A program made the translations under genes and the position numbers. Shown here one piece after another: positions 5,412 to 60,161 of a stretch of DNA of 64,000 nt; the first letter of the stretch is position 1, and each line of letters starts with the position of its first letter. The notes under the pieces are model-generated. The model did not search any database and was not told the origin of the DNA. It was given only the letters and a program-made list of their open reading frames with translations. The stretch lies in the sequence record PQ657772.1, one strand, 5' to 3'.

Positions 5412-5852
5412 TTATTGTAAAACTTTGAGTTTGTAAAGCATTCCTTCACAAAAACTCATAATGTCTTCTAGCGTGTTAGTACTACCATAGTCTTCAGCCT
5501 CTTCTAGCATAGCATGAATGGCTTTACATTGACTAACATATTCTTCAAGAATTGGTACACAATCCTCGATAGGGGTAAAACGATAACTGTTACCAGTACC
5601 TACCTGCAATGCCCCGTGAGTGTTCATAATACCCTCTACAAATGCATCAACGTACTCAGGTAACTCTTTGTATAGTTCATCCAATTGTAGGTGCTTCGTG
5701 TAGAAATGGCTCTGTAAATGCCAGTTGTGAGCAGCAGCACTTAAAAATAAACTATTCTCAATAAATGTAAGTAGTACTTCATCATAAGAACTATCTTCTT
5801 CAGTATCTCCGATAAAGTCCATTACATGTCGTAAATCATTAATATTTTCCAT
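5412..5852 (-). CDS. Dps/ferritin-like protein
   Basis: AHNWHLQ...KHLQLDELYKELPEYVDAFVE resembles the Dps ferroxidase helices (H..W, H...DELY....D...E). Confidence 0.8.
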   Translation of the reverse strand: MENINDLRHVMDFIGDTEEDSSYDEVLLTFIENSLFLSAAAHNWHLQSHFYTKHLQLDELYKELPEYVDAFVEGIMNTHGALQVGTGNSYRFTPIEDCVPILEEYVSQCKAIHAMLEEAEDYGSTNTLEDIMSFCEGMLYKLKVLQ

Positions 5853-5882: not shown

Positions 5883-6311
5883 TTAGTTAATAATAAAGGT
5901 AACTTCAGGATTCATTTCTGAAACTGCATTTCTCTTACTTCTATTCCATAGTACTCTATTGTTATATAATGAAGAATCACAAATTATAAGTAAGCAATTC
6001 CTTAATCTACTTACAGTACTTTGATTACTTAAATCAGTTTCTGTAACAAAAAATACATTATCAGGAACTTCTACAGGAATTGATTTATCAAAGAAGAAAA
6101 CTACAATAGGTCTGTTTGTATGAACTAAATTAATAAAGTCTAAAATACTGTTATAAAATTCAGTTCCTTTGTTTAAACTTAATGGATCTTTGATTCTCTT
6201 CAAATAGGTCTGAACCAAATTATGATCGCTTTTGATTTGATACTCAAAATATTCTTTGAATAACATTTGTGTTAATTCAGATGTATTGGATATTTTCGTT
6301 GTGTTACTCAT
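5883..6311 (-). CDS. hypothetical protein
   Basis: ORF directly downstream of ncRNA-like element A. Confidence 0.65.
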   Translation of the reverse strand: MSNTTKISNTSELTQMLFKEYFEYQIKSDHNLVQTYLKRIKDPLSLNKGTEFYNSILDFINLVHTNRPIVVFFFDKSIPVEVPDNVFFVTETDLSNQSTVSRLRNCLLIICDSSLYNNRVLWNRSKRNAVSEMNPEVTFIIN

Positions 6312-6397
6312 TCACTTCGTTCTCTCGTAACTCAAGAAGTCACTACGTTTACTTCGTAAACTAGTTCCTTCTGAAAATGATAATGTACTTTAAAAGC

Positions 6398-6966
6398 TTG
6401 ACGGGATTTGTTGAGGACTATTTCATCCCCCCGCAGGGGAATGAAGGTAATAAAAAAGAGACAATTAAGTCTCTCTTGACGATGATGGCATCGGATATTA
6501 TCGAATTGCGAATTTCTCAAATTTTGGACGGATCTTTCCTGTACCAAAATTTAGAGAGCGAAAGCGGGTTGCTCGGTTTCTCTCTATCGCAGTCATATGC
6601 AACGGTCGCTGGTCTTTTCATCAACAGCACTCAGTACTAAACTCTATTCGATCAAAGTAGTACCTGTTCTCAAATTTTGGACGCAACTTTCTTGTAAAAT
6701 CGCGTCCACAATCCTTGAACTCCCTTAGCAAATTCGTAAGGTGCGAACCTTATACATCTATCTAGGAACTCTCTGTGTGCTTATTGGAGTTCTTTATACA
6801 GCCGTGTCGCCGTGATTCGTGGTCTTATCTCGTGTTTGTTTGATTGCCAGTACTCTAACAGGTTTCTTTTGCTGTTCGCTACAACGGTAAAGCTCATCTA
6901 TCCTTTACATTTTCAAGAGAAGTAGGTTCTCATTATCCATTTTTCAATGTCCGTTGTCATTTTACA
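6398..6966 (-). ncRNA. putative large structured ncRNA, copy A (family unassigned)
   Basis: GC-elevated intergenic block sharing at least 8 collinear conserved blocks with 58749-59216; compensatory changes; G.U pairs only work on the minus strand; promoter at 6973-7000. Confidence 0.7.
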
Positions 6967-6972
6967 ATATAC

Positions 6973-7000
6973 ATTATATCACTAGGATGTATTATGTCCC
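6973..7000 (-). promoter_or_regulatory. promoter GGGACA-N13-TGA-TATAAT driving element A
   Basis: Read directly; same architecture at six other sites. Confidence 0.8.
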
Positions 7001-7001
7001 G

Positions 7002-7400
7002 TTACATGTATACCTTTTTCAAATCCTTGGAACAACGGTCAAAAATTGTGTTGATGAATTCGACATCCTCTTTGATATTGGAGTCTATAGCATCATTCTC
7101 GTTTCTTGTTGTGTTCCTGTATTTGTGTTCAGGGTGATTGTATACCACCTTGACTACATTATTTAGGTCTACAAAAAATGACGATTTTTGCGTATAGGAA
7201 GCCTGAAGCTTGATGAGTTTACCATCGTTTTGTAGATTAGTCTTGTGAATTAGTTCTTCAATACCATCTAAATGGCTATAGCTATCCTGTTCTTTGACGA
7301 ATGTAACAGTTACCAGTACTGACTTCTCATCTCCAAAGTCAGAGATATTTTTAACAGCACTGATGATTTCTAAGTTTGAAAAATCTAATTCTTTTAGCAT
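7002..7400 (-). CDS. hypothetical protein
   Basis: Likely start MLKEL at 7400 (TAATG overlap). Confidence 0.65.
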   Translation of the reverse strand: MLKELDFSNLEIISAVKNISDFGDEKSVLVTVTFVKEQDSYSHLDGIEELIHKTNLQNDGKLIKLQASYTQKSSFFVDLNNVVKVVYNHPEHKYRNTTRNENDAIDSNIKEDVEFINTIFDRCSKDLKKVYM

Positions 7401-7810: not shown

Positions 7811-8422
7811 TTAATTGTGATTATTCAATTTCTTTTGTTCTTTTTTTAGAGCTTTCATATGTCGTCCAAAATCACGAACATGCCATATATGGTCGGTTTC
7901 CCATAGTTCTGTACGTAAACGGCGTTCTTCCAATTCTTCTGGCGTAGGAATTTTAGATTTCTTCTTATCTTTATTGAAAAAATCATTCATATGTTCTTCC
8001 AGTAGATTTCTACCCTTAACTTTTTCCAGGAATTCATCTACTGATTCAGTTTTATTAGAACGAAGACTGTTACAACGTGAACACATGGTGTTGTAATTTG
8101 ACTCTAAATCAGGTCCACCCTTAGATGCTAGTTGGTTATGATCTACTGTCATCAGTACTTCATATAGACCACAAACTGCATAGACATTTAAGTGAGGTTT
8201 ACCATATACCGGATCAGTGCTATGTGAACGCTCAATGCGAACTTCAGTGGCTTCAATACCACACGCAACGCATTTACGATTCTTAACGAATGTAAGTACT
8301 TTTTGTGGGAAGTATCGGAAAGTAACACCGTTATATGTATAGCGTTTCATCTGCGTACTTCTTTGATTTAACTCATCAAGAAGTGATAGTTTGGCAACAT
8401 AGTAGACCTGATATTTTGACAT
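7811..8422 (-). CDS. HNH endonuclease-domain protein
   Basis: CVACG...TVDHNQLASKGG...N...MCSRCNSLRSN. Confidence 0.85.
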   Translation of the reverse strand: MSKYQVYYVAKLSLLDELNQRSTQMKRYTYNGVTFRYFPQKVLTFVKNRKCVACGIEATEVRIERSHSTDPVYGKPHLNVYAVCGLYEVLMTVDHNQLASKGGPDLESNYNTMCSRCNSLRSNKTESVDEFLEKVKGRNLLEEHMNDFFNKDKKKSKIPTPEELEERRLRTELWETDHIWHVRDFGRHMKALKKEQKKLNNHN

Positions 8423-12900: not shown

Positions 12901-15630
12901 TTAATGCCAACGTGTACCAGAGCTTGAAGGAACACCAGAACTTGCAGGGATAGCAGAACCACGCTTAGTTGTACTAGGTCTGTATGTCAAGAATCGTGTT
13001 ACCTTTTCAGTATCAATTGACGTAATACTCGTACTTCCAGTAACAATATCACCAACATATACGTTTGTCAATGTCTCATCAAGAAGAGTTGTACTGATAA
13101 CGTATGCCGCTTTTCTTGTGTTACGGTTCATTTGAATGTAAAGATAAAAAGTACTGTTAGCTGGGTTAGTTTTAATAGTACTTAATTCTATGGTTTGAAT
13201 CGCTAATCTATCAAACATACCACCAAGGAATACCGGAACTTCACGGGTGAAGTACACAGTGAAACCTTCAGCAACATCTTGTGAAACTACTACGATTTTA
13301 TCTTGTACTGTTCCTGAACCATCAATCAACCCATCCATCTGTGTTGATGTTGTCCCAAAGAGACTAAACACTGCTTTAGTTTGATAATCTGAATCTTGAA
13401 GATGATAGTATCCAAATCCAACACCTGGTATAACTCCGTGCTGGAATGCATTGCCATTATCTATGTAGCTGGATGACATAAATCGGTTAGATGTAATCAA
13501 ACCATTCACTGTTTTAGCAATCATCAATTTGAATTGAGCATTACCAGGTTGTGAAAACTGATGAACTGCATCAACACCAATATAACCAAAACCAGAATAC
13601 TTAGCAACAGTTAGACCAGTACAGCGTTTCATATAGGCTTCGGTTACAATACCTGTTACAGAATTAAGTGTTTCGTATCTAGAACTCACCATAGACGCAG
13701 AACTAATATTGGTTCCTGAAACCGTGACATCAACTTCAGAATATATTGCATAACCTTGGTTATTGCCTAAGTTATATGCAGAAACCACCGCAATAGATTT
13801 TGAGAAAGAACTATCTGGTACATAATATAAAGCAATTTTACCAGAAAATGCTCCTACTATTCCAATATTAGCAAGTATTTCTTGTTTTAATGTTTCCAGA
13901 ACATTATCACCAATTGTATAAGAACCATCAAATTCTAAAGTATCTGGGTTAAACAAACCACCACTTGTTTTGTATACACCTTCAATGAATGATGTCCCAT
14001 AACATTTAACTGAACCGTCAGTATCAATTAATGAAATCATACCTGTATATTTGTAGTTGTCGCCGAGGCGAGTTCGGTTGGCTTGTGGTGCAAAACCATT
14101 AAGTGTTGTATTGTTTTGTACTGAATTGAACTGGAAGGTTGGATCAGTACCAATTTCAGAAAATACTGTATTGTTATAACCATATGACTCATCTTCATAT
14201 GTTCCAGAACATGCTAACAGTACTTTACGTTTATCAATAAAACGTGTTCCTAAAAGGTTTTCGCCTACTGCACTACCATATGTTGGTGCAACGTTTACAA
14301 ATTTGGAATTGTTCGCTTTACGAGTACTGGCAACCCAACTATCATATGGTGTTCCTGTTACGTTATAAACCTGAATACCATAGGTTTCAGATGAACTCCA
14401 ACGAGCACGTGTGCTGAATACTAAACCGTCATAGGTTTGGCATATAGAACCAACGTTGCCTAATTGCGGAACACCTAACTGTGTACCCATGAAGTTATTC
14501 ATCTCAATGGCAAATGGGTTTGTTAGTGTGAATCCATCAACATCATTATATTCCGCTGCTATTGGTGCTCTACTACTTCCATCAATTGATAATGATTTAG
14601 AGTTGATAGTATAAACAAAACTAAAACCACTAGCATAAACAGTACTAATATATAGATTTGATACTAAACGGTTAGTTGGGAATAATGTAATTCTAATCTT
14701 TGATAAATCTGGACTTACGTTTGCTTGTATATTATAATCTGTATAATCTGAATATTCAACTCGTGTAACTGGTGAAGTGCATTCAAATAATGAATCACTA
14801 CTAGTTCCAACTGAATATAATCTTTCATAAATTTTCAAATTATTAGCACTTGTGTAGTTAACACTTCTTAAGGTTTGACCAGAAAAACCAGTAACCTTAG
14901 CAAAAGTACTCATAGTACCATCTTTAATACTACTTGTATTAACAGTATATAATGTTAAAGCCAAACCATAGTTTGCTATAGTAGTGTCTTTGCACCACAC
15001 AAATACTTTATCATTAACGATATGTGCATACAATGGTTTATCTGTACCAAATGATGTAGCAGCGATAGAAGCGTGAATATGTGCAACTTCGTTAAATGTA
15101 CCATTTGTTAAAGTGAAAATATAATTACTTGCACTAGATAGGCTAACTAGTAATTCATAACCATTCGTTCCGATGAACTGTTTAACATTTTCAGTACTTG
15201 GAAGAATTCTCGGATGATATTTTGATGTAGTACTGATAACACTACTTTGTGTTAGTGCATCAATATTACGCAAATCACGAATGAATGCATAGTAATATCC
15301 TTCAGTACTACCATTTGTACCAGCACGTAATACCACACCAGTACCATCATCTTCGACTATTGTTGGTTGCATACGGTATACATCTGAAAGCGACGTTGCC
15401 CCTTCGTATGAACCATTAACGTTTAATGGTAGATAATCCATTTCCCCTATACGGGAGATTGGTAACATATCAAGTATTTTTTGAACTTCTGATCTTTTAT
15501 AAATTGGATAGTCAACAATACCTGTATTTGCGTCTGGTGCTGTACCATTAAAAGTACGCATAGCGTACTTTCCACCAATTGCCAAATTTCCAAGTATAGC
15601 AGCACTACCAATGATGCGTTTGGATGACAT
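12901..15630 (-). CDS. tail fibre/baseplate-associated structural protein (909 aa)
   Basis: Ser/Thr/Gly-rich beta-type composition; N- and C-termini shared with the two adjacent ORFs. Confidence 0.7.
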   Translation of the reverse strand: MSSKRIIGSAAILGNLAIGGKYAMRTFNGTAPDANTGIVDYPIYKRSEVQKILDMLPISRIGEMDYLPLNVNGSYEGATSLSDVYRMQPTIVEDDGTGVVLRAGTNGSTEGYYYAFIRDLRNIDALTQSSVISTTSKYHPRILPSTENVKQFIGTNGYELLVSLSSASNYIFTLTNGTFNEVAHIHASIAATSFGTDKPLYAHIVNDKVFVWCKDTTIANYGLALTLYTVNTSSIKDGTMSTFAKVTGFSGQTLRSVNYTSANNLKIYERLYSVGTSSDSLFECTSPVTRVEYSDYTDYNIQANVSPDLSKIRITLFPTNRLVSNLYISTVYASGFSFVYTINSKSLSIDGSSRAPIAAEYNDVDGFTLTNPFAIEMNNFMGTQLGVPQLGNVGSICQTYDGLVFSTRARWSSSETYGIQVYNVTGTPYDSWVASTRKANNSKFVNVAPTYGSAVGENLLGTRFIDKRKVLLACSGTYEDESYGYNNTVFSEIGTDPTFQFNSVQNNTTLNGFAPQANRTRLGDNYKYTGMISLIDTDGSVKCYGTSFIEGVYKTSGGLFNPDTLEFDGSYTIGDNVLETLKQEILANIGIVGAFSGKIALYYVPDSSFSKSIAVVSAYNLGNNQGYAIYSEVDVTVSGTNISSASMVSSRYETLNSVTGIVTEAYMKRCTGLTVAKYSGFGYIGVDAVHQFSQPGNAQFKLMIAKTVNGLITSNRFMSSSYIDNGNAFQHGVIPGVGFGYYHLQDSDYQTKAVFSLFGTTSTQMDGLIDGSGTVQDKIVVVSQDVAEGFTVYFTREVPVFLGGMFDRLAIQTIELSTIKTNPANSTFYLYIQMNRNTRKAAYVISTTLLDETLTNVYVGDIVTGSTSITSIDTEKVTRFLTYRPSTTKRGSAIPASSGVPSSSGTRWH

Positions 15631-16246: not shown

Positions 16247-18943
16247 TTACCAATTGATTGTTCCTGTTTGTGACGGTAGACCATAACTAACTGGGAATGA
16301 AGAACCAGCAGCTTCAAGAGACGCACCGAAAATATCCAATCTTGAACGTTTTTGTATGTTAACATTTGATATTTGTAGTGAGTTTGTTTGTATAGTACCT
16401 ATCCAGAAAATATTATATGCTGTAGAACCAGTTTCTGAAATAACATCAGTTGTTATTACATATTTTGCATTACCTTGTTCCATTTTAACATATACATGAA
16501 ATAATGTGTTTGCTGGATTAGCCTTAACTGTAGTTAAGTTTATACTAGTAATCGGTAATGTAAATGCTTTACCAGAAAGAATTACTGGAGTTTCTTCTGT
16601 GAAGTACACAATAAAACCTTGAGCAACGTCTTGTGAAACTACGTTAATCGGTGCACCTTGAGCAGTCCAGTTATTATAATCAGCAATTGTAGTACCACAT
16701 TTTTGGAAAGTCATTTTGTTTACATAGTCTATTGCTTGGAAATAACCAAAACCAATACCAGGTAAAGCTGCTGGTTGAATACCTTGCTCATAACTTGCAT
16801 GTGAACCACTGATAATAAAACTATCAAATTGTGCAGTTGCTTTTGTTACATATGCTCTGAATTGGTGTGTGTTTGTATTACCAATAGTTGGGTGAGATAA
16901 TGGGTCAGAACCACCTATGAAGTAGAAAGAACCACCATCATATATTGTTAAACCAACAGAAGACGAAGCAAAACTACCATTACCATTTGGTGTAAAGTTA
17001 CTTCCGTAAACGTTTTCTAGTACTAAACGCTTGAAGGTAATTGTAGTGATATTACCTGAACGTGTATTCACATTCACTTCAGCAATTCTAATATAGTTCT
17101 GATATGTATTTGTAACTGTACTTAGCATTACGAATGCAGGTATATCAGTTTGTTGTGGAACAAACAATGTCATATCTTTATAAGCAGCAGAAGATAAGTT
17201 CCAGTCGCTTAGTACTTTGGCGTATTCAGCATTTCTGAAATTATCAAGTACAGATTGAGTAACACTAATGATACCAGTTCCGTTCATATTTTTATCATAT
17301 GATAGTGATTGGGAATATCTCTGACCTACCATGAATATCCCACCATTTGTAGTAACATTATTACCACTAATGGAACTAATAAAAACTCTGTTGTTCGTGT
17401 TATCTGTCACATTAGCACGTTCTGTTGTTGGCTCATAACCTTGTATGGTTCCACGTGATAAAGAATTAAACGTAAAGTTAGGAGTACTTTTATGAACTGC
17501 ATAAGATGGACGGAATGCACCAGAACCAGTTGAACGAGAATACTGTTTAGTACTGTTCCCTGGAAGCAATTCTACGCCGTTAATAAAAGAACCAACTGCT
17601 GAACCAAATGAAGGACGAACTATGCCATTTCTGAAATCAGTTGAAATGTTCGCACGTACATTAATCATGCTATATATTGATTGTGCAGTAAATTTAGCTT
17701 TCTGCATAAGCAATGGTTCTGCTAAGTTTGGACATGCAGTACAGAATACTTCACCTGTATTCAGATAATAATATGAACTGTAAATGTTTCTTGCACCGCT
17801 ATGGTCATATAAAGGATCTTTGTTGAGAACGTTACCAGTAGCAACCAATGCCGAACCTGTGTTTGTAACAACAAATGGTGCAGCAAATGTACCAATATCG
17901 TTCCCATTATCCAAGTTACATTGTTTAGTACTCATGTTAAAATTGAAACTATAACTATGCTGTGGTCGGGTATTGTAGTTTGCCATAGTGAACCATGCGT
18001 CACCATTCATTCTGAATCGGAAGTTCTGCGTTCCTGGCTCCTGAGCAACATATAAATCGATAGATGTCATATAAATCCCCATACCAGCCAAATTTTGTGG
18101 TACATAGACATATGGCTTATCAGCAATATTAGTTGAGTTAACATGGTCAGTAATGATTATATTATTCTGAGCAGTATATGTAGTATTGTAAAAAGTTTTT
18201 GTTGTCCATCCCGTGATTCGGGTAGCAGTATAAGTACCGTTTGCAATATTCAATACAACACGAACAACAACAATCTGTAGTTTGTTATTTTCATTAAGGA
18301 CGTTGAATACATAAACTGAACCGTCTTCTGCCATCATAGCATACTCAATCCCACCTTCAGGTGAAATATCAGCTTGGTTCACAAAAAGACCACTATGTTG
18401 TGTATCATCCAATGTACCATTCGTTACTGATATAAACAACCCATTAGTATTGGTAGATGTGTCATTGTAACGACCTAACAGTATTTTTGAATCAGTATTG
18501 TATAAACCAATAGCAACACGGTTTGCCCCAAAATAGCCAGGCTTATACTGACGGCTTGTATTAACAGTACGGCTCATATCGGTAACGGATAATGCGTTCG
18601 CTAGGTAAGAATAAAATAAACCTTCAACACTACCGTTTGTACCACTACGTAATAGTACTAATGTGCCATCGTTTTCTAAAAGTATTTTGTTTCTACGTTG
18701 GGATTGGTTTTCTGATGCACCATTAAAATCTCCAGATACCCCAGCAGGTAGATAGTTATGTGTACCATAATGCGAGATTGGAAGTAAACTAATTACATCA
18801 AGTAATTCTTCTTTGGAATATGTATCAATTTCCATATTACCATTAGCATCAAATACTTGATCATTGATGCCCTGTACTGTTCTTTTCCCTTTAACTGTCA
18901 CATTATGAGTGACGTCTAAGCCACCATATATTTTCTTTGACAT
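16247..18943 (-). CDS. tail fibre/baseplate-associated structural protein (898 aa)
   Basis: Paralogue of 12901-15630: LPISHYG, LLRSGTNGSVEG, VVSQDVAQGF.VYFT.E.PV. Confidence 0.7.
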   Translation of the reverse strand: MSKKIYGGLDVTHNVTVKGKRTVQGINDQVFDANGNMEIDTYSKEELLDVISLLPISHYGTHNYLPAGVSGDFNGASENQSQRRNKILLENDGTLVLLRSGTNGSVEGLFYSYLANALSVTDMSRTVNTSRQYKPGYFGANRVAIGLYNTDSKILLGRYNDTSTNTNGLFISVTNGTLDDTQHSGLFVNQADISPEGGIEYAMMAEDGSVYVFNVLNENNKLQIVVVRVVLNIANGTYTATRITGWTTKTFYNTTYTAQNNIIITDHVNSTNIADKPYVYVPQNLAGMGIYMTSIDLYVAQEPGTQNFRFRMNGDAWFTMANYNTRPQHSYSFNFNMSTKQCNLDNGNDIGTFAAPFVVTNTGSALVATGNVLNKDPLYDHSGARNIYSSYYYLNTGEVFCTACPNLAEPLLMQKAKFTAQSIYSMINVRANISTDFRNGIVRPSFGSAVGSFINGVELLPGNSTKQYSRSTGSGAFRPSYAVHKSTPNFTFNSLSRGTIQGYEPTTERANVTDNTNNRVFISSISGNNVTTNGGIFMVGQRYSQSLSYDKNMNGTGIISVTQSVLDNFRNAEYAKVLSDWNLSSAAYKDMTLFVPQQTDIPAFVMLSTVTNTYQNYIRIAEVNVNTRSGNITTITFKRLVLENVYGSNFTPNGNGSFASSSVGLTIYDGGSFYFIGGSDPLSHPTIGNTNTHQFRAYVTKATAQFDSFIISGSHASYEQGIQPAALPGIGFGYFQAIDYVNKMTFQKCGTTIADYNNWTAQGAPINVVSQDVAQGFIVYFTEETPVILSGKAFTLPITSINLTTVKANPANTLFHVYVKMEQGNAKYVITTDVISETGSTAYNIFWIGTIQTNSLQISNVNIQKRSRLDIFGASLEAAGSSFPVSYGLPSQTGTINW

Positions 18944-19802: not shown

Positions 19803-21608
19803 TTATTTGTGTTGTATACGCTCACAACATTCTTGTTGTTTACCTTTGTTGAATCCACGAGACGATGGGTTCCCCAAATATCCAGAAACACGACGAATCA
19901 CTGAGATTGTCTTCTCATTGCGATTATCACATACTGGACAATGAAAACCGTGTTTATCTACACTGAACTCACCTTTATACCCACACTCGTAACACTGGTC
20001 AATTGGCTGGTTGATGCCAAAATATGGAATCTTTGTGTAAGCGTAATTGACTAAAGTCTCAAGTGCTTGAATATTGTTACTTAGGTTGGGTGATTCAACA
20101 TAACTGATGTTTCCACCATTACTGAGGTAAGCAAAGCCCTCTTCGTAACTCCACTTATCAAATGGTGAACTTTCTACCCATACTGGTTGATGGAAGGAAT
20201 TTGTGATGTAATCACGTTTTAGTACTGAAGGGTATTTAGATTCGATGCAACGTGCAAATTTGTAGCAAAGTGACTCTGCTGGGGTTCCATATAGACTAAA
20301 AGCTATATTACTCTCTTTTTTGAACTCATCGCATTTTACTTTCATATAATTCAGTACTGACATACAGAACTCCTTACTAATAGAACCAGTCAGAATTTCT
20401 GAACATTCAACTAAACCAACGTAACCAATACTAATACTAGCATATCCGTTATAAAATAGCTTGTCAATCGTTTCTTCTGCCCCTAAACGTGAAAGTGCAC
20501 CTTCCATGAACAAAATCGGATTCTGCTTCGCTTTTGTGCCTTTTAAACGCTCTACGCGGTTCATCTGAGCACGATATGCAATATTCATATGCTCGTCTAT
20601 TTTATCAAAAAACTCTCCATCTGAGGCACTTTCAAGAGCAATTAGAGGTAAATTGATAGAAACCACGCCTAAGTTGAAACGACCGTTATATTGCTCATTT
20701 CCATTGGCATCTTCCCATTTTCCTAAAAATGAACGACAGCCCATCGGAGTTACTGCTGTACTGCTACTTCCTGTAACTTTGTGATTTAACGGCACAGAAA
20801 CGAAGTCTGGGTAGATTCTCTTCGATGCACAACGCATTGCCAACTGTTTCATGTCATAGTTGCAATCATCGCTATTCATGTTGATTCCGTCCTGTAAAAA
20901 GAAAATTACTTTAGGAAACACAGGAGTAATCTTATCTTTACCTAAACCATTCTCATGTACTTTTAAGTACTGTTCAGTGATTAATTTACCAAATTTTGAA
21001 GTATTCAGTCCCAAACTAAGAGAAATGAATGCTGCTTGACCATTTGTACTAATCATTGAATTTGTCTGGTAAAGTAAGGTTTGACACCCATCATAGACTT
21101 CTTTTCGTAATTCTTCCTCAATGTATTCAGTACTGAGATTATATGCCTTTTGCTTCGCTAATAGCTTATCCCACGACTTTTGGACGTAAGGTTCAAGACC
21201 AACGTCGATATGAGCCAACGATTGACCACCGTACTGGGAACTAGCAACAGCTTGTACAATTTGTGTCAGTACTGTACATGCTACACTAAAACTCTTTGGT
21301 TCTTCAATTTTGGCACAACCAATGGTAAATCCATTTTTTAGCATATCTGGGTAGTTAACTAAGCAACAGTTAGTTAATGGGCTGATATAGTAGTCTAAAT
21401 CATGAATATGACCATAACCATCATTATGCCACTGCATTAGCTCCTTTGGAATAACATCTTGTGAATAATGCTTAGATAGAATACCAGCAAGTAAATCCCT
21501 GTGTGTATTGACGCATTTCGCATCTTTGTTTGCATTTTCATTTGTAAGATCAGTATTGCTCTGATTTAGGAAATTTGTTACGTCAGTATATAATTTATCT
21601 AATTGCAT
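19803..21608 (-). CDS. nrdD: class III (anaerobic) ribonucleoside-triphosphate reductase, no ATP cone
   Basis: HIHDLDY, NCCLV, MGCRSFL, GRFNLGVVSINLP, YGTPAESL, CxxC..CxxC, RRVSGYL glycyl-radical motif; likely start MQLD. Confidence 0.97.
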   Translation of the reverse strand: MQLDKLYTDVTNFLNQSNTDLTNENANKDAKCVNTHRDLLAGILSKHYSQDVIPKELMQWHNDGYGHIHDLDYYISPLTNCCLVNYPDMLKNGFTIGCAKIEEPKSFSVACTVLTQIVQAVASSQYGGQSLAHIDVGLEPYVQKSWDKLLAKQKAYNLSTEYIEEELRKEVYDGCQTLLYQTNSMISTNGQAAFISLSLGLNTSKFGKLITEQYLKVHENGLGKDKITPVFPKVIFFLQDGINMNSDDCNYDMKQLAMRCASKRIYPDFVSVPLNHKVTGSSSTAVTPMGCRSFLGKWEDANGNEQYNGRFNLGVVSINLPLIALESASDGEFFDKIDEHMNIAYRAQMNRVERLKGTKAKQNPILFMEGALSRLGAEETIDKLFYNGYASISIGYVGLVECSEILTGSISKEFCMSVLNYMKVKCDEFKKESNIAFSLYGTPAESLCYKFARCIESKYPSVLKRDYITNSFHQPVWVESSPFDKWSYEEGFAYLSNGGNISYVESPNLSNNIQALETLVNYAYTKIPYFGINQPIDQCYECGYKGEFSVDKHGFHCPVCDNRNEKTISVIRRVSGYLGNPSSRGFNKGKQQECCERIQHK

Positions 21609-57014: not shown

Positions 57015-57548
57015 TTATTTCCTCATGTATTTTATTACATCTTCAAATAGTTTAGTTTTCAGTGCATCATCATTACCAGGTAGAAAAGTACTGAAGCTAT
57101 TAAAATCTTCATTTTTGGCAAACTCACGCATCTGTGTGGAACTGTAGCGACTTACATTTCGGTCAATTCCAGCTTGAACTGCCTTGATTGAACAAAAATT
57201 ATATAACTTCCCATTGTACGTGTCAAGTGTTTTTTGGAATGGTTCAAGTCTATCTGAACCACATATGAAAAGAACATCTAAGTACTTTCCATCCAGTTCT
57301 CTCATTATATCAAACAGATTATCTTCTGTATAGATATTTTCTTGTACAGATGGGTAAAATCCTTCTGTATAGTACATTTTCAGTTCAGGAGGTAATGGGT
57401 TTTTGACGGCATCAGTACTGGTACTAAGGAATATTTTCAAATCAGCATTGTACTGTTCTTGTAGTGCTTGAGCTTTTTCAAACACTAAACCATGACCTCG
57501 ATGTACAGGGTTAATTCTTCCGAATGTCACTACGCATGTTTCTTTCAT
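57015..57548 (-). CDS. cytidylyltransferase/NMN adenylyltransferase-like (HxGH) protein
   Basis: FGRINPVHRGH, KNPL, CGSDR, SST.MR. Confidence 0.88.
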   Translation of the reverse strand: MKETCVVTFGRINPVHRGHGLVFEKAQALQEQYNADLKIFLSTSTDAVKNPLPPELKMYYTEGFYPSVQENIYTEDNLFDIMRELDGKYLDVLFICGSDRLEPFQKTLDTYNGKLYNFCSIKAVQAGIDRNVSRYSSTQMREFAKNEDFNSFSTFLPGNDDALKTKLFEDVIKYMRK

Positions 57549-58069
57549 ATGTTCTTCATCACCTGACCAATAGATTTAAGATGGTTGATTTTAGCTGGAG
57601 TCAAATACTTATCCAGTACTATTAAACAACTAGGGAATGGAGCACTGTCAGTCTTTTTATCTGGTTCTTCAGGGATACCGAACTTTAAGCGACCTTTTAT
57701 AAAACAAATACAATCACAAACTTTCGCAGCATAATCCTGAAAGGCTATAGTATCAGTTCTTGATGGTACGAGAATCAGTACTGTAGCACCTTTGTTATAT
57801 GCATCAACTGCCTTAGATAACCACGTTTTCAAATCACTGTACGGTGGGTTGAGCCACACGATATTGTTTCCCCAGTCCTGTTCAAGTGAATTGTCTTCTG
57901 GTGTAAAGAACTTATCACACAATGCAGTTTCTTTGACACACGCTGCATCTAGTGTAAATTCCCAGAGTTCATCCAAATCTTCAAAGAAATCCTTTGGAGT
58001 AGTCCAGTTATCTTTTCCAGTACTGAAATGTACTGATTGTTTTTTCTTCGAAGCATCCTTCTTCGACAT
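57545..58069 (-). CDS. phage-type DNA N6-adenine methyltransferase
   Basis: W.TP..FF..L...F.LD, WLNPPYS, LVPSRTDT, FIKGRLKF, APFPS. Confidence 0.9.
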   Translation of the reverse strand: MSKKDASKKKQSVHFSTGKDNWTTPKDFFEDLDELWEFTLDAACVKETALCDKFFTPEDNSLEQDWGNNIVWLNPPYSDLKTWLSKAVDAYNKGATVLILVPSRTDTIAFQDYAAKVCDCICFIKGRLKFGIPEEPDKKTDSAPFPSCLIVLDKYLTPAKINHLKSIGQVMKNI

Positions 58070-58085
58070 ACATAATTTCCTTTGA

Positions 58086-58682
58086 TTATAGACAGTTAAG
58101 TACTATGTCATCAAAAGTACTACTGTCAATGTTGTATTCATATAAAAATTTAAAATGTGATCCATAACGCATCATCAGATTAAACTCTTCTTCAGTATTA
58201 AATTTGTAATCATGAAGAGTTTCAAGGGTACATGTTAAACCTAAAAACTCAATAATTTCTGATGTTACATCATTTCCTGAATTGAAGTATTTAACCCAAA
58301 CACATTTTCCTTGTGGGTTGAATTTTCTATATTCTCCTTCTAGTTCTCCATTGACGATATGTGCTTTCGCACTGATTAGATTATTACTATAACGCTCTTC
58401 GTAGTAGTTCCCATAACGAGCTTTAAGAATTGTAGGCTTCTTGGTTGGGAATAACTTAATGGAAGTTAATTCAAAACCGCACTGCAACTCTTTGATGTAC
58501 GAAATACATCCCTTTTCTTTAATCACAACAAAACCAGTAAAATTCTCTTGGTCTTGGTTCTGATTGTCTGAATCAACAAATTCTAGTGTTTTATAAGTGA
58601 CGCTTTTAGATTTTTTAATAAATGACATCATTATTCCTATGGAAACATCAATGACTGTACATGGCGTTGACTTCATCAACAC
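58086..58682 (-). CDS. MORN-variant repeat protein with EE.F motif
   Basis: NGELEGEYRKFNPQG; true start probably MSFIKK. Confidence 0.7.
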   Translation of the reverse strand: MLMKSTPCTVIDVSIGIMMSFIKKSKSVTYKTLEFVDSDNQNQDQENFTGFVVIKEKGCISYIKELQCGFELTSIKLFPTKKPTILKARYGNYYEERYSNNLISAKAHIVNGELEGEYRKFNPQGKCVWVKYFNSGNDVTSEIIEFLGLTCTLETLHDYKFNTEEEFNLMMRYGSHFKFLYEYNIDSSTFDDIVLNCL

Positions 58683-58689
58683 CAGTCGA

Positions 58690-58718
58690 ATTATACACGC
58701 TTCGCATGTCTAATTCAA
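58690..58718 (-). promoter_or_regulatory. sigma70-type promoter TTGAAT-N17-TATAAT downstream of element B
   Basis: Read directly. Confidence 0.6.
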
Positions 58719-58748
58719 CGAAAGTACTATGATTTGTTTTAATTAATA

Positions 58749-59280
58749 TTGACGGGGTTTGCTTGAGCATATTTCATCCCCCCGCAGGGGAAAGAACAAA
58801 AAAAGTTTGACGCTGGTGGCCTTCACATAGTTCATATCACGAATTCTCTTACGAGGCGAAAGCGGGTTGCTCTGTTTCTCTCTATCGCGGTTCTTGTAGC
58901 AACGGTCGTCGGTCTTAAACATCCCGACACATAATACAAATACCATATGACCAGTACTTGTATTTGATTTCACGAATTTTGGACGCAACTATATTGTATA
59001 AATTACGACCGCAAATTTCTCATGAAATCTCCCTTAGATAATTGGTAAGGTGCGATCCTTATATGTCTATCGAGGAACTCTCTTTATCCTATTGGAGTTC
59101 TTTATACAGCCGCATTGCCGTGAGTGGTTCAAACTATGCCATCATCTAACGGGTTTCATTTGCTGTTCGTACTGAAAGGACTACTCATCTACCCTCTACT
59201 TTTCGAGTGGATTAGGCTTTAATCATTTCCATATGGAACCTTTCAGGATTAAAAAAAGGCGACAACATATTCTGCTGTCA
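58749..59280 (-). ncRNA. putative large structured ncRNA, copy B (homologue of 6398-6966)
   Basis: Same conserved blocks in the same order; covariation with copy A; promoter at 59287-59314. Confidence 0.7.
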
Positions 59281-59282
59281 CC
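59251..59282 (-). terminator. terminator-like hairpin at the 5' end of element B
   Basis: GGTGACAGCA-GAATA-TGTTGTCGCC followed by T7. Confidence 0.65.
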
Positions 59283-59286
59283 TTAC

Positions 59287-59314
59287 ATTATATCATAAAC
59301 TTATGGTCTGTCTC
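59287..59314 (-). promoter_or_regulatory. promoter GAGACA-N13-TGA-TATAAT upstream of element B
   Basis: Read directly. Confidence 0.75.
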
Positions 59315-60161
59315 AGTTGTATTCTGTTTTTTCAGTGAAATTAGTTAAGATATCTGCACTTAAGCTTCTCATAACCTCAATCTTACTTGGCATGAACCTG
59401 TGCTTGTTTTTTACATACAACTCATCATCTTCAATGAAAGATGTGAACATGAATACCATATCTTCACGTGGAATTGAGAGAATATTACAGTTTTCATTTT
59501 CAGCAACAGGGGAATCATTGTAGTACTTAGAGAATGCAGTACTTTGACGACCGATTATGATAGAATTTCGGATTAGAAAATTACTACAGTACTGAAAATC
59601 TTTGTAGTACTTGTCAAGGATATATGGCATTATCGCTTCTTTCACTTCTTCATATCCATTGGTACTATCAATTTCAGTACAATAATCTTCTCGGTCTTTT
59701 TTCCCTCGATGATTATCAAACTCGTACTCAAAGAATAAATTTTCATTTAATGAATCATTTGAACCAACTGATCCACTATAGTATGATTTTCTATCATTCA
59801 TTCGATCATCCGGGCATGATGCATACATAGAAATGTCATGTGTTGACGTACCGATATAAATTTTCTTAGTAATGTGATTGTACGCGATGTAATCATAATC
59901 TTGTACTCCAGTTAGCATTAACTGGAACATCAATTCATCAGGAACATCAATTAACGGGTACTCAAACTTCGAATATCTACTACGACAGAAATTCTTTTCA
60001 AATGCTCGATATGCGATGAAATCTTTTAGGTTTGTAATAGATTCATGCTCATGTGTACTACTGGTGCGTACATTGACATTAGTAGACGAGCAATACCCTT
60101 CAGATTCTTCTGCGTAGTCATAATAACCCTTACTGTAGTCAACGATTAGATAAAGTTTCAT
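59313..60161 (-). CDS. hypothetical protein (FQL motif family)
   Basis: PDELMFQLMLTG. Confidence 0.75.
   Translation of the reverse strand: MKLYLIVDYSKGYYDYAEESEGYCSSTNVNVRTSSTHEHESITNLKDFIAYRAFEKNFCRSRYSKFEYPLIDVPDELMFQLMLTGVQDYDYIAYNHITKKIYIGTSTHDISMYASCPDDRMNDRKSYYSGSVGSNDSLNENLFFEYEFDNHRGKKDREDYCTEIDSTNGYEEVKEAIMPYILDKYYKDFQYCSNFLIRNSIIIGRQSTAFSKYYNDSPVAENENCNILSIPREDMVFMFTSFIEDDELYVKNKHRFMPSKIEVMRSLSADILTNFTEKTEYN

Follow-up and report, generated by a model that had tools for sequence, protein, structure and literature searches.

A large structured non-coding RNA encoded by paralogous genes in enterobacterial jumbo phages and by integrative islands

Introduction

Few RNA classes of bacteria and phages as large and complex as the one described here are known, and most of them have no assigned function. 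ROOL and GOLLD are RNAs of 600-800 nucleotides (nt) from phages and prophages that form RNA-only cages, their function being unassigned, and in ROOL what covariation had suggested to be a tertiary contact turned out to join separate molecules (PMC12286853). OLE is cited in the same paper as containing a kink-turn used in protein binding (PMC12286853). Among lytic phages, PA5oct produces abundant transcripts without an open reading frame (ORF), named ncRNA001-004 (PMC7318152), and ICP1 an abundant ORF-less transcript of ~800 nt (PMC7567579). Here we analysed a 64,000-nt stretch of sequence record PQ657772.1 (the window, to which coordinates refer unless another locus is named), in which an earlier reading of the letters alone (the original prediction) had singled out two related gaps, elements A (6398-6966) and B (58749-59216), as genes for a large RNA. 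A and B are old paralogues of one minus-strand RNA gene: each encodes a large structured non-coding RNA downstream of its own promoter sequences, and the gene is free-standing, not a leader. The analysis adds to the original prediction a long-range pseudoknot, ~95 nt of extra structure, paralogues outside the window and copies in bacterial islands.

Like ROOL and GOLLD, the A/B RNA is a large phage RNA from free-standing genes, with many covarying helices, a pseudoknot and no known protein partner (PMC12286853). ROOL and GOLLD come from Lactobacillales or rumen phages, whereas the present RNA belongs to jumbo phages of Enterobacteriaceae and to islands, lacks nearby tRNAs, occurs as three to five diverged paralogues per genome and carries two matching repeats (R1 and R2) and a downstream hairpin module. 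ROOL and GOLLD build homo-oligomeric cages of RNA only, and the present RNA might possibly oligomerise, its pseudoknot contact being conceivable within one molecule or between molecules. With OLE it shares large size, an ornate fold and conserved unpaired nucleotides, and a tandem G·A junction is plausible at its helices H1/H2/H3; OLE, however, is chromosomal in extremophilic Firmicutes and has dedicated Oap proteins, whereas the present RNA has no constant protein neighbour. The transcripts of PA5oct, a distant relative of the RaK2/121Q group, and of ICP1 are likewise large and non-coding, arise from intergenic gaps and are highly expressed through infection; they are defined by expression without a known structure, whereas our RNA is defined by structure. 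PA5oct ncRNA001, 002 and 004 were rejected as expressed homologues, since nhmmer at maximum sensitivity found no similarity to them; ncRNA003 and the ICP1 transcript were not compared.

A conserved fold read from the minus strand

The original prediction had suspected an enterobacterial jumbo phage, and the 751 bases around element A were indeed 100% identical to Escherichia phage EC.P1 of the genus Asteriusvirus. The same bases were 95-100% identical in ~30 further Asteriusvirus genomes, 121Q, PBECO4, phAPEC6 and Sharanji among them. All these phages are lytic jumbo coliphages of 350-385 kb, and the window thus comes from a jumbo coliphage of the 121Q/PBECO4 type. Judged by match positions, the window corresponds to EC.P1 248001-312000. 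Element A is located between complete ORFs. A (6380-7010) and B (58730-59320) were collinear and aligned end to end with 79% column identity, every shared block that had been listed for the pair was present where it had been placed, and a 27-nt core motif occurred exactly twice in the window against 0.00 expected. The elevated GC content noted for the gap was confirmed, at 40.9% in A and 42.3% in B compared to 34.6% for the window.

Homologues in related jumbo phages were collected from GenBank phages, and from IMG/VR by searching with a conserved motif, the most conserved block of the RNA (Table 1), and 30 distinct copies were aligned; nhmmer recovered all family members. RNAalifold on this alignment gave 78 pairs, compensatory double changes being seen in 45, and a curated model that combined RNAalifold with our own covariation scan comprised 81 base pairs in 15 helices. 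In the curated model 97.5% of cells were paired, compared to 80.1% after column shuffling and 39-45% when the 3' partners were slid by 1-3 columns. Double-sided changes affected 52 of the 81 pairs (412 cells in the 30 copies), and not one of 500 shuffles attained any of the observed measures, bearing out the large multi-stem non-coding RNA that had been proposed. A held-out test used eleven copies of the island type, found in bacterial genomes and on metagenome contigs, that took no part in deriving the model: they retained 75-79 of 80 pairs, and 14-26 of the retained pairs differed on both sides from copy A. A divergent copy in phage RaK2 retained 61 pairs, with 10 pairs falling in alignment gaps. 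The minus-strand RNA of A (6312-6966) had a minimum free energy of -173.8 kcal/mol (z = -7.3 versus dinucleotide shuffles).

The RNA consists of at least 14 conserved helices around several multi-way junctions, held by a 7-bp pseudoknot, and many of its unpaired nucleotides are invariant across homologues. All three stems named in the original prediction are real. The change from GCUG/CAGC in A to GUCG/CGAC in B is helix H11, and that from GCU/AGC to GUA/UAC is H2 (G-CU..AG-C to G-UA..UA-C), in which alignment pair 211-224 was UA in 17, CG in 8 and AU in 5 of the 30 copies. The third is a GGACGC/GCGUCC hairpin, which pairs through G·U in B on the minus strand only. H1, H2 and H3 form a three-way junction, in which we infer tandem G·A pairs. 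In the pseudoknot (helix 10), the apical loop of the long hairpin H9 pairs with a single-stranded segment ~140 nt downstream; all seven pairs show double-sided changes, with 99% of cells paired. Its covarying variants include AUCGAAU/AUUCGAU, UUCAUGU/ACAUGAA and AUUGUAU/AUACAAU, and the pairing sequence differs between paralogues, being AUCGAAU/AUUCGAU in A, UCAUAU/AUAUGA in B and AUUGUAU/AUACAAU in a third copy. A modular hairpin (UACAAnAnAG...CCGUCYAAAAUU) was observed twice in A (6514-6546 and 6667-6699) and once in B (58969-59001) and was missing in some homologues; it behaves as an optional peripheral domain.

As the original prediction had it, the RNA is read from the minus strand, because G·U cells outnumber A·C cells by 203 to 12 when the 81-pair model is read in that direction; 97.5% of cells were paired on the minus strand of the window and 89.5% on the plus strand. 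A protein-coding reading was rejected. No positionally conserved ORF was found in the homologues, stops occurred in all frames on both strands of every homologue (minima of 2-6 per frame), the longest ORFs differed between homologues in frame and place, and pairwise indel lengths were mostly not multiples of three (3952 and 1325 versus 775). Tiny ORFs for "hypothetical proteins" are annotated over the element in 121Q, RaK2, Kaldavass and 7t3; the annotated loci include L001 3186-3341 (gp516 of 121Q), L106 887-1093 (ORF245 of RaK2), L002 465-560 and 727-885, and L004 468-835. The small ORFs annotated over the RNA in 121Q, RaK2, Kaldavass and 7t3 are probably miscalls, because their frame and place differ between genomes and every frame contains stops. 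Where GenBank records leave this region empty or populate it with spurious small ORFs, the present description corrects them.

No known family accounted for either copy. Rfam 15 gave no match at gathering thresholds across the whole window, and at relaxed thresholds only noise for A and B (E up to 10) and for an island copy (E up to 5). Covariance models of ROOL (RF03087), GOLLD (RF01998) and OLE (RF01071) did not match the window, A, B or the island copy; the size class to which the element had been assigned, that of these three RNAs, is a fair description, but it is a member of none of them. In agreement with the original prediction, which had failed to match the element to transfer-messenger RNA (tmRNA), ribonuclease P (RNase P) RNA or group I/II introns, no covariance model of RNase P RNA, tmRNA or 6S RNA matched and ARAGORN found nothing; group I and II introns were rejected because no model matched and the element lies between complete ORFs with its own promoter. 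A hammerhead ribozyme was considered for the junction NAGAUGAG-hairpin-CGA, which fails both core consensus (CUGAUGA ... GAAA) and topology: A replaces the conserved U4, GAAA is short of one A, position 6 varies, and the strand after GA pairs downstream (in H3), not with the strand preceding H1. The hammerhead models in Rfam did not match A or B. The searchable literature, including the genome papers on Sharanji, CBB and phAPEC6, held no description of the RNA. As far as these tools can tell, the family is undescribed and a new class of large structured RNA. It is an "ornate" non-coding RNA, an operational class rather than a homology family, defined by a length above 400-500 nt, covarying helices, conserved unpaired nucleotides and the lack of an ORF.

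Promoters, repeats and the 3' region

The promoter that had been proposed upstream of A was found, and the start of RNA A is predicted near 6966. Both RNA copies use the common sigma-70-like promoter class of the phage (GACA-N13-TGATATAAT). In its phage-wide form, GACA-N12-16-TGATATAAT, this class had nine sites in the window versus 0.25 expected, every one of them on the minus (coding) strand, and a TGnTATAAT/TATACT box was located upstream of every homologue. Directly downstream of the B promoter is a hairpin with a U7 run, kept in all B-type paralogues; a matching hairpin is annotated in GAP32 as a rho-independent terminator. Judging by these features it is probably the terminator of the upstream gene for a 282-amino acid (aa) protein, and would therefore form the 5' end of RNA B. 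A pair of 282-aa ORFs close to B proved not to be paralogues of each other.

The original prediction ended the element at 6398, whereas the conserved unit extends ~95 nt further, to ~6303. After the core of A follow, in order, R1, a terminator-like hairpin, a G-rich hairpin, R2, an AU-rich spacer and a two-hairpin module. The core is about 480 nt long, and the RNA would measure about 570 nt to R2 or about 660 nt if the downstream module shares the transcript. R1 and R2 (consensus AUC..CGUCAR) covary by identity, not complementarity, at three positions (mutual information 0.74-0.94): both boxes are CUUCAA in RaK2 and CGACAA in a Serratia island copy. No strand in the RNA was complementary to them, the best position being common to 8 of 58 sequences. 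Because of this covariation by identity and the missing internal complement, R1 and R2 are probably single-stranded sites required to match each other.

The terminator-like hairpin was present in A-type paralogues, where it follows R1, and in those linked to endonuclease VII; a consensus scan did not call that of A. B has no such hairpin between R1 and R2, and island copies have a hairpin at the corresponding place without the U-run. All five pairs of the G-rich hairpin (helix 15) vary solely from C-G to U·G, a change compatible with the minus strand alone, and the hairpin is therefore under selection as minus-strand RNA. The downstream module was found in nearly all homologues. Its loops carry GAACGWAGUGA, and the motif AACGWAGUGA had three hits in the window versus 0.31 expected, two of them in the A module, of which the second hairpin overlaps the AUG of ORF 5883-6311. 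RNAalifold gave no consensus on a MAFFT alignment of the module, in which arm lengths differ, whereas single-sequence folds anchored on the motif returned the same two-hairpin architecture in 30-odd copies with differing arm sequences. In a trimmed alignment the second hairpin had five of five covarying pairs, and it is the sole module hairpin supported column by column. The module of B was identified by comparison with the family-wide architecture.

Table 1. Coordinates of the RNA genes and associated features in the window
Feature	Position	Strand	Basis or remark
Promoter of A	6973..7000	minus	-35 GGGACA (7000-6995), 16-nt spacer, TG-extended TATAAT ending at 6973
Core of RNA A (5' leader and H1-H14)	6487..6966	minus	Alignment, covariation
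Short 5' leader of A	between promoter and H1	minus	
H1 hairpin	6925-6915/6905-6898	minus	Copy A
H2 hairpin	6893-6889/6882-6878	minus	Between invariant UGAG and CGAA columns
H3	6875-6871/6802-6798	minus	H3/H4 (6875-6798) enclose a variable insert
H5	6792-6766	minus	Copy A
H6	6752-6737	minus	Copy A
H7	6727-6722/6605-6600	minus	Closes large domain containing H8, H9 and H11
H9 long hairpin	6664-6633	minus	Apical loop bears 5' arm of pseudoknot
Pseudoknot 5' arm (AUCGAAU)	6646..6652	minus	H9 apical loop; own covariation scan
H11	A 6629-6625/6611-6607; B 58929-58925/58911-58907	minus	
Most conserved block (CGACCGUUGC...GCGAUAGAGAGAAACCGAGCAACCCGCUUUCG)	6560..6605	minus	3' strand of H7 and H13 with invariant loop
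H12	6591-6587/6511-6507	minus	Encloses H13 (invariant 15-nt loop) and H14
Pseudoknot 3' arm (AUUCGAU)	6500..6506	minus	Covariation
R1 of A (AUCAUCGUCAAG)	6475..6486	minus	Direct repeat
Terminator-like hairpin and U6 of A (AAGAGAGAC UUAAUU GUCUCUUUUUU)	6452..6477	minus	Read from sequence
G-rich hairpin of A, helix 15 (CUUCAUUCCCC UGC GGGGGGAUGAAA)	6421..6446	minus	Conserved
R2 of A (AAAUCCCGUCAAG)	6397..6409	minus	Direct repeat
Downstream module of A, two hairpins	6303..6373	minus	AACGWAGUGA at 6340-6349 and 6312-6321
Promoter of B	59287..59316	minus	GAGACA, 16-nt spacer, TG-extended TATAAT
Hairpin and U7 downstream of B promoter	59251..59284	minus	Kept in all B-type paralogues
Core of RNA B	58819..59250	minus	Helices H1-H14 as in A; alignment, covariation
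Pseudoknot arms of B	58951-58945 (GUCAUAU) and 58837-58831 (AUAUGAA)	minus	
3' part of B	58748..58818	minus	R1 58806-58818, G-rich hairpin 58771-58798, R2 58748-58760
Downstream module of B	58653..58716	minus	Hairpins 58688-58716 and 58653-58687; directly upstream of next ORF
GACA-N12-16-TGATATAAT sites (starts)	6998, 28203, 33590, 37120, 42555, 44777, 53221, 59312, 61015	minus	

Distribution among phages and integrative islands

Homologues were found in 62-72 GenBank phage records, spanning Asteriusvirus, Mimasvirus (GAP32, CBB, XbC2), Eneladusvirus (Serratia BF, Yen9-04, Erwinia pEa_SNUABM), the 7t3/Munch group and XaC1, and RaK2 had a divergent full-length copy (nhmmer E = 8e-50). The RaK2 copy sits directly downstream of the phage gene for an RNA polymerase sigma factor, ORF244 (L106, 1-517). 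In IMG/VR, all 33 loci were jumbo-phage contigs or fragments thereof, and looser motif scans of that database gained RaK2 alone, so that the family is restricted to this clade of phages and to the islands described below. BLAST matched four to five places per genome and the number of diverged paralogues was three to five; in 121Q, three full copies were mapped at ~193, ~247 and ~327 kb.

Each paralogue class was syntenic across genera, so that the copies are old and without recent movement. The B class is flanked by a gene for a 282-aa protein and one for ~180-200 aa, and 26 B-type loci have the same downstream gene at ~94 nt. A second class is situated between a divergent endonuclease VII gene and convergent genes, its unit ending at a bidirectional terminator, and in a third an ADP-ribosylglycohydrolase gene comes next. 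An ADP-ribosylglycohydrolase-like gene directly after the RNA was seen at L041 6876-7811, L029 729-1667 and five further loci. In islands the RNA and a module of DarT and ADP-ribosylglycohydrolase are a few kb apart, and a link to this phage class may be coincidental.

A scan of 185,579 bacterial genomes revealed full-length copies in Enterobacter chinensis, Silvania hatchlandensis, Serratia sp., Enterobacteriaceae RIT714 and several metagenome-assembled genomes; two E. coli chromosomes carried a copy of the RNA, and metagenomes added 52 further loci. No homologue was found on any of 72,556 plasmids. In E. chinensis (JARDVI010000005.1) the copy belongs to an island of ~10.5 kb (L107, 5909-16400) between ppdD-hofBC and nadC. 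There a serine integrase gene is followed by the RNA, by a convergent gene for a cI-like S24 repressor and then, in order, by genes for a Ner-like protein, the 286-aa membrane protein that is conserved in the islands, LprI and a resolvase; last come DarT, a 561-aa protein with an ADP-ribosylglycohydrolase domain and a UvrD-like helicase, which look like defence cargo. In E. coli LR-29-1 the tyrosine integrase of a 10.6-kb island at ffs (L105, 15850-26640) is split by IS3, and the RNA occupies an unannotated gap of 1.4 kb (19888-20577 together with the downstream module). This island also encodes a resolvase and a homologue of the membrane protein, but its cargo is different, comprising DUF4326, DUF488 and a dual-OB protein. 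Neither a rep nor a primase gene was seen in the islands. The type of integrase was swapped between islands while the RNA remained adjacent to it, and the RNA therefore looks like part of the island backbone.

In a tree, island copies fell in at least three separate places among phage copies, and the main island clade was closest to XaC1-like phage copies. Main-clade island copies and XaC1-like phage copies share a homologous promoter (TGAAAY...TATACT). In CBB and GAP32, a -35 class of the TGAAACG type has been reported (PMC5259590). Immediately upstream of the island RNA promoter in E. chinensis is a perfect palindrome (CCCTATAAATATC-GGTA-GATATTTATAGGG; L107, 7816-7845), conserved in several islands; it could be an operator or the integrase terminator.

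Possible functions and alternatives

With moderate confidence, we favour a general picture in which the product of the A/B gene family acts in trans as a stable RNA and binds either a partner or itself in phage-host conflict; we place far less confidence in any particular partner. As a stable folded molecule the RNA would work by binding, with the invariant unpaired blocks, the CGUCAR boxes and the GAACGWAGUGA loop as candidate surfaces. The partner may be a protein, most plausibly contacted through the single-stranded CGUCAR boxes and the GAACGWAGUGA loop. Alternatively, the partner might be further copies of the RNA, through the loop-strand ("pseudoknot") contact, which could equally well be intermolecular; the paralogue-specific contact sequence would keep the assemblies of different paralogues apart. 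The role of the RNA is probably in the takeover of the host by the phage or in the contest between phage and host defence, because the gene has its own promoter of the common class, many copies have a terminator-like hairpin, and the islands hold defence-type cargo. A related jumbo phage may switch on the island copy, since the island promoter is homologous to that of the closest phage copies, and an island RNA induced in this way could be a decoy or a means of exploiting the phage. A bolder form of this proposal, which we regard as conceivable but unlikely, is that the RNA is a machine that assembles itself and not a passive scaffold, that the "pseudoknot" is an intermolecular kissing contact, as in ROOL, that builds three to five orthogonal RNA-only assemblies or catalytic particles per infected cell, and that a copy under a phage promoter lets defence islands sense or sabotage the jumbo phage.

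Several observations weigh against the general picture of a trans-acting RNA. The transcript ends are predictions from sequence, and in A and B a co-oriented ORF begins a few nucleotides downstream, making an effect in cis possible. A-type copies have the terminator-like hairpin within the conserved unit and B-type copies at their extreme 5' end, so that which parts share one molecule is ambiguous. The R1/R2 variant differs among copies inside one genome, which argues against a single genome-encoded reader of the boxes. No protein gene is constantly adjacent across paralogue classes, the downstream genes being different, and the 286-aa island membrane protein was rejected as a candidate partner since no phage homologue of it was found.

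ColE1 RNA II is a folded sigma-70 transcript of ~550 nt whose fold controls events at a G-rich site near its 3' end; like the transcripts of T4 origins, it is a primer made by host RNA polymerase. The A/B RNA could on this model be the primer or R-loop RNA of replication origins: DNA synthesis would start from a persistent hybrid formed close to the G-rich hairpin and the AT-rich stretch, the phage would have several origins and the islands would borrow one. The several dispersed copies per genome, as in 121Q, would suit this, as would a promoter-to-G-run distance of ~550 nt (comparable to RNA II), the layout of an invariant G6 run, R2 and an AU-rich stretch, the identity of R1 and R2 within each copy, as expected if R1 of the RNA pairs template DNA at R2, and the backbone position of the RNA beside the integrase of islands in which no rep or primase gene was seen. 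We consider it improbable nevertheless, as there is no inflection of GC skew at A or B (the cumulative skew is monotonic through both, although phage skew mostly follows transcription), and as the run shared by R1 and R2 is just 6+3 nt, weak for strand invasion. The core of the present RNA is far more strongly conserved than that of RNA II, its invariant unpaired nucleotides and pseudoknot exceed the apparent needs of a primer, and the G·U pairs of the G-rich hairpin reflect selection on RNA, not on DNA alone. A ColE1-type plasmid replicon was rejected, given the lack of homologues on 72,556 plasmids, of an RNA I-like antisense gene and of an Rfam RNAI match. A cis-acting leader of the riboswitch, T-box or antiterminator type, which would control read-through into or translation of the downstream gene by processive antitermination or as a sensor, with the internal and start-codon hairpins as expression platform, strikes us as improbable as well. 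It would explain why in A and B a co-oriented ORF directly follows the module, with the AUG of A inside the last hairpin, why the 26 B-type loci share their downstream gene, and why many copies have a terminator-like hairpin between R1 and the G-rich hairpin. However, all genes downstream of the class linked to endonuclease VII are convergent and a bidirectional terminator closes its unit, which rules out a purely cis-regulatory role; furthermore, downstream genes differ among paralogue classes, the island RNA converges on the repressor gene, and the hairpin after R1 lacks a U-run in islands.

We are very doubtful that the RNA is a ribozyme or self-processing RNA that cleaves or joins at the two CGUCAR boxes and so releases or circularises the segment between them. 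No Rfam ribozyme model matched, the hammerhead-like junction fails in consensus and topology, and no internal guide complementary to the boxes was found (at most 8 of 58 sequences at any position), even though invariant unpaired nucleotides, multi-way junctions and a pseudoknot are typical of large ribozymes and two identical boxes per molecule would suit two substrates of one active site. Selfish repeated DNA spread by HNH or endonuclease VII genes, or small protein genes, can be largely dismissed as explanations. An HNH gene (7811-8422) is near A, an endonuclease VII gene accompanies one paralogue class, and tiny ORFs are annotated over the element in the four phages named above, but the synteny of the paralogues across genera indicates that they are old and have not recently moved, the annotated ORFs shift in frame and position between genomes with stops in every frame, and strand-specific G·U covariation together with 52 compensatory pairs requires selection on a folded single strand.

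Returning to the trans-acting RNA that we favour, its host phages can be propagated on E. coli K-12, Sharanji having been isolated on strain MG1655, making genetics, RNA-seq, pull-downs and cryo-electron microscopy (cryo-EM) directly feasible. The several old paralogues per genome, with their copy-specific pseudoknot sequences, provide a natural allelic series, and the co-evolution of R1 and R2 by identity is a further comparative handle. Islands with DarT-type and other defence-like cargo link a large RNA to phage-host or phage-island conflict.

Other features of the window

None of the genes directly flanking the two RNA copies has an assigned function. Elsewhere in the window, genes at 5412-5852, 7811-8422 and 57545-58069 (minus strand) encode a Dps-like starvation-inducible DNA-binding protein, the HNH endonuclease (7811-8422) and a DNA-methyltransferase-like protein. 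A 73-nt direct repeat with 79% identity was located at 13218-13290 and 16570-16642, presumably in paralogous genes.

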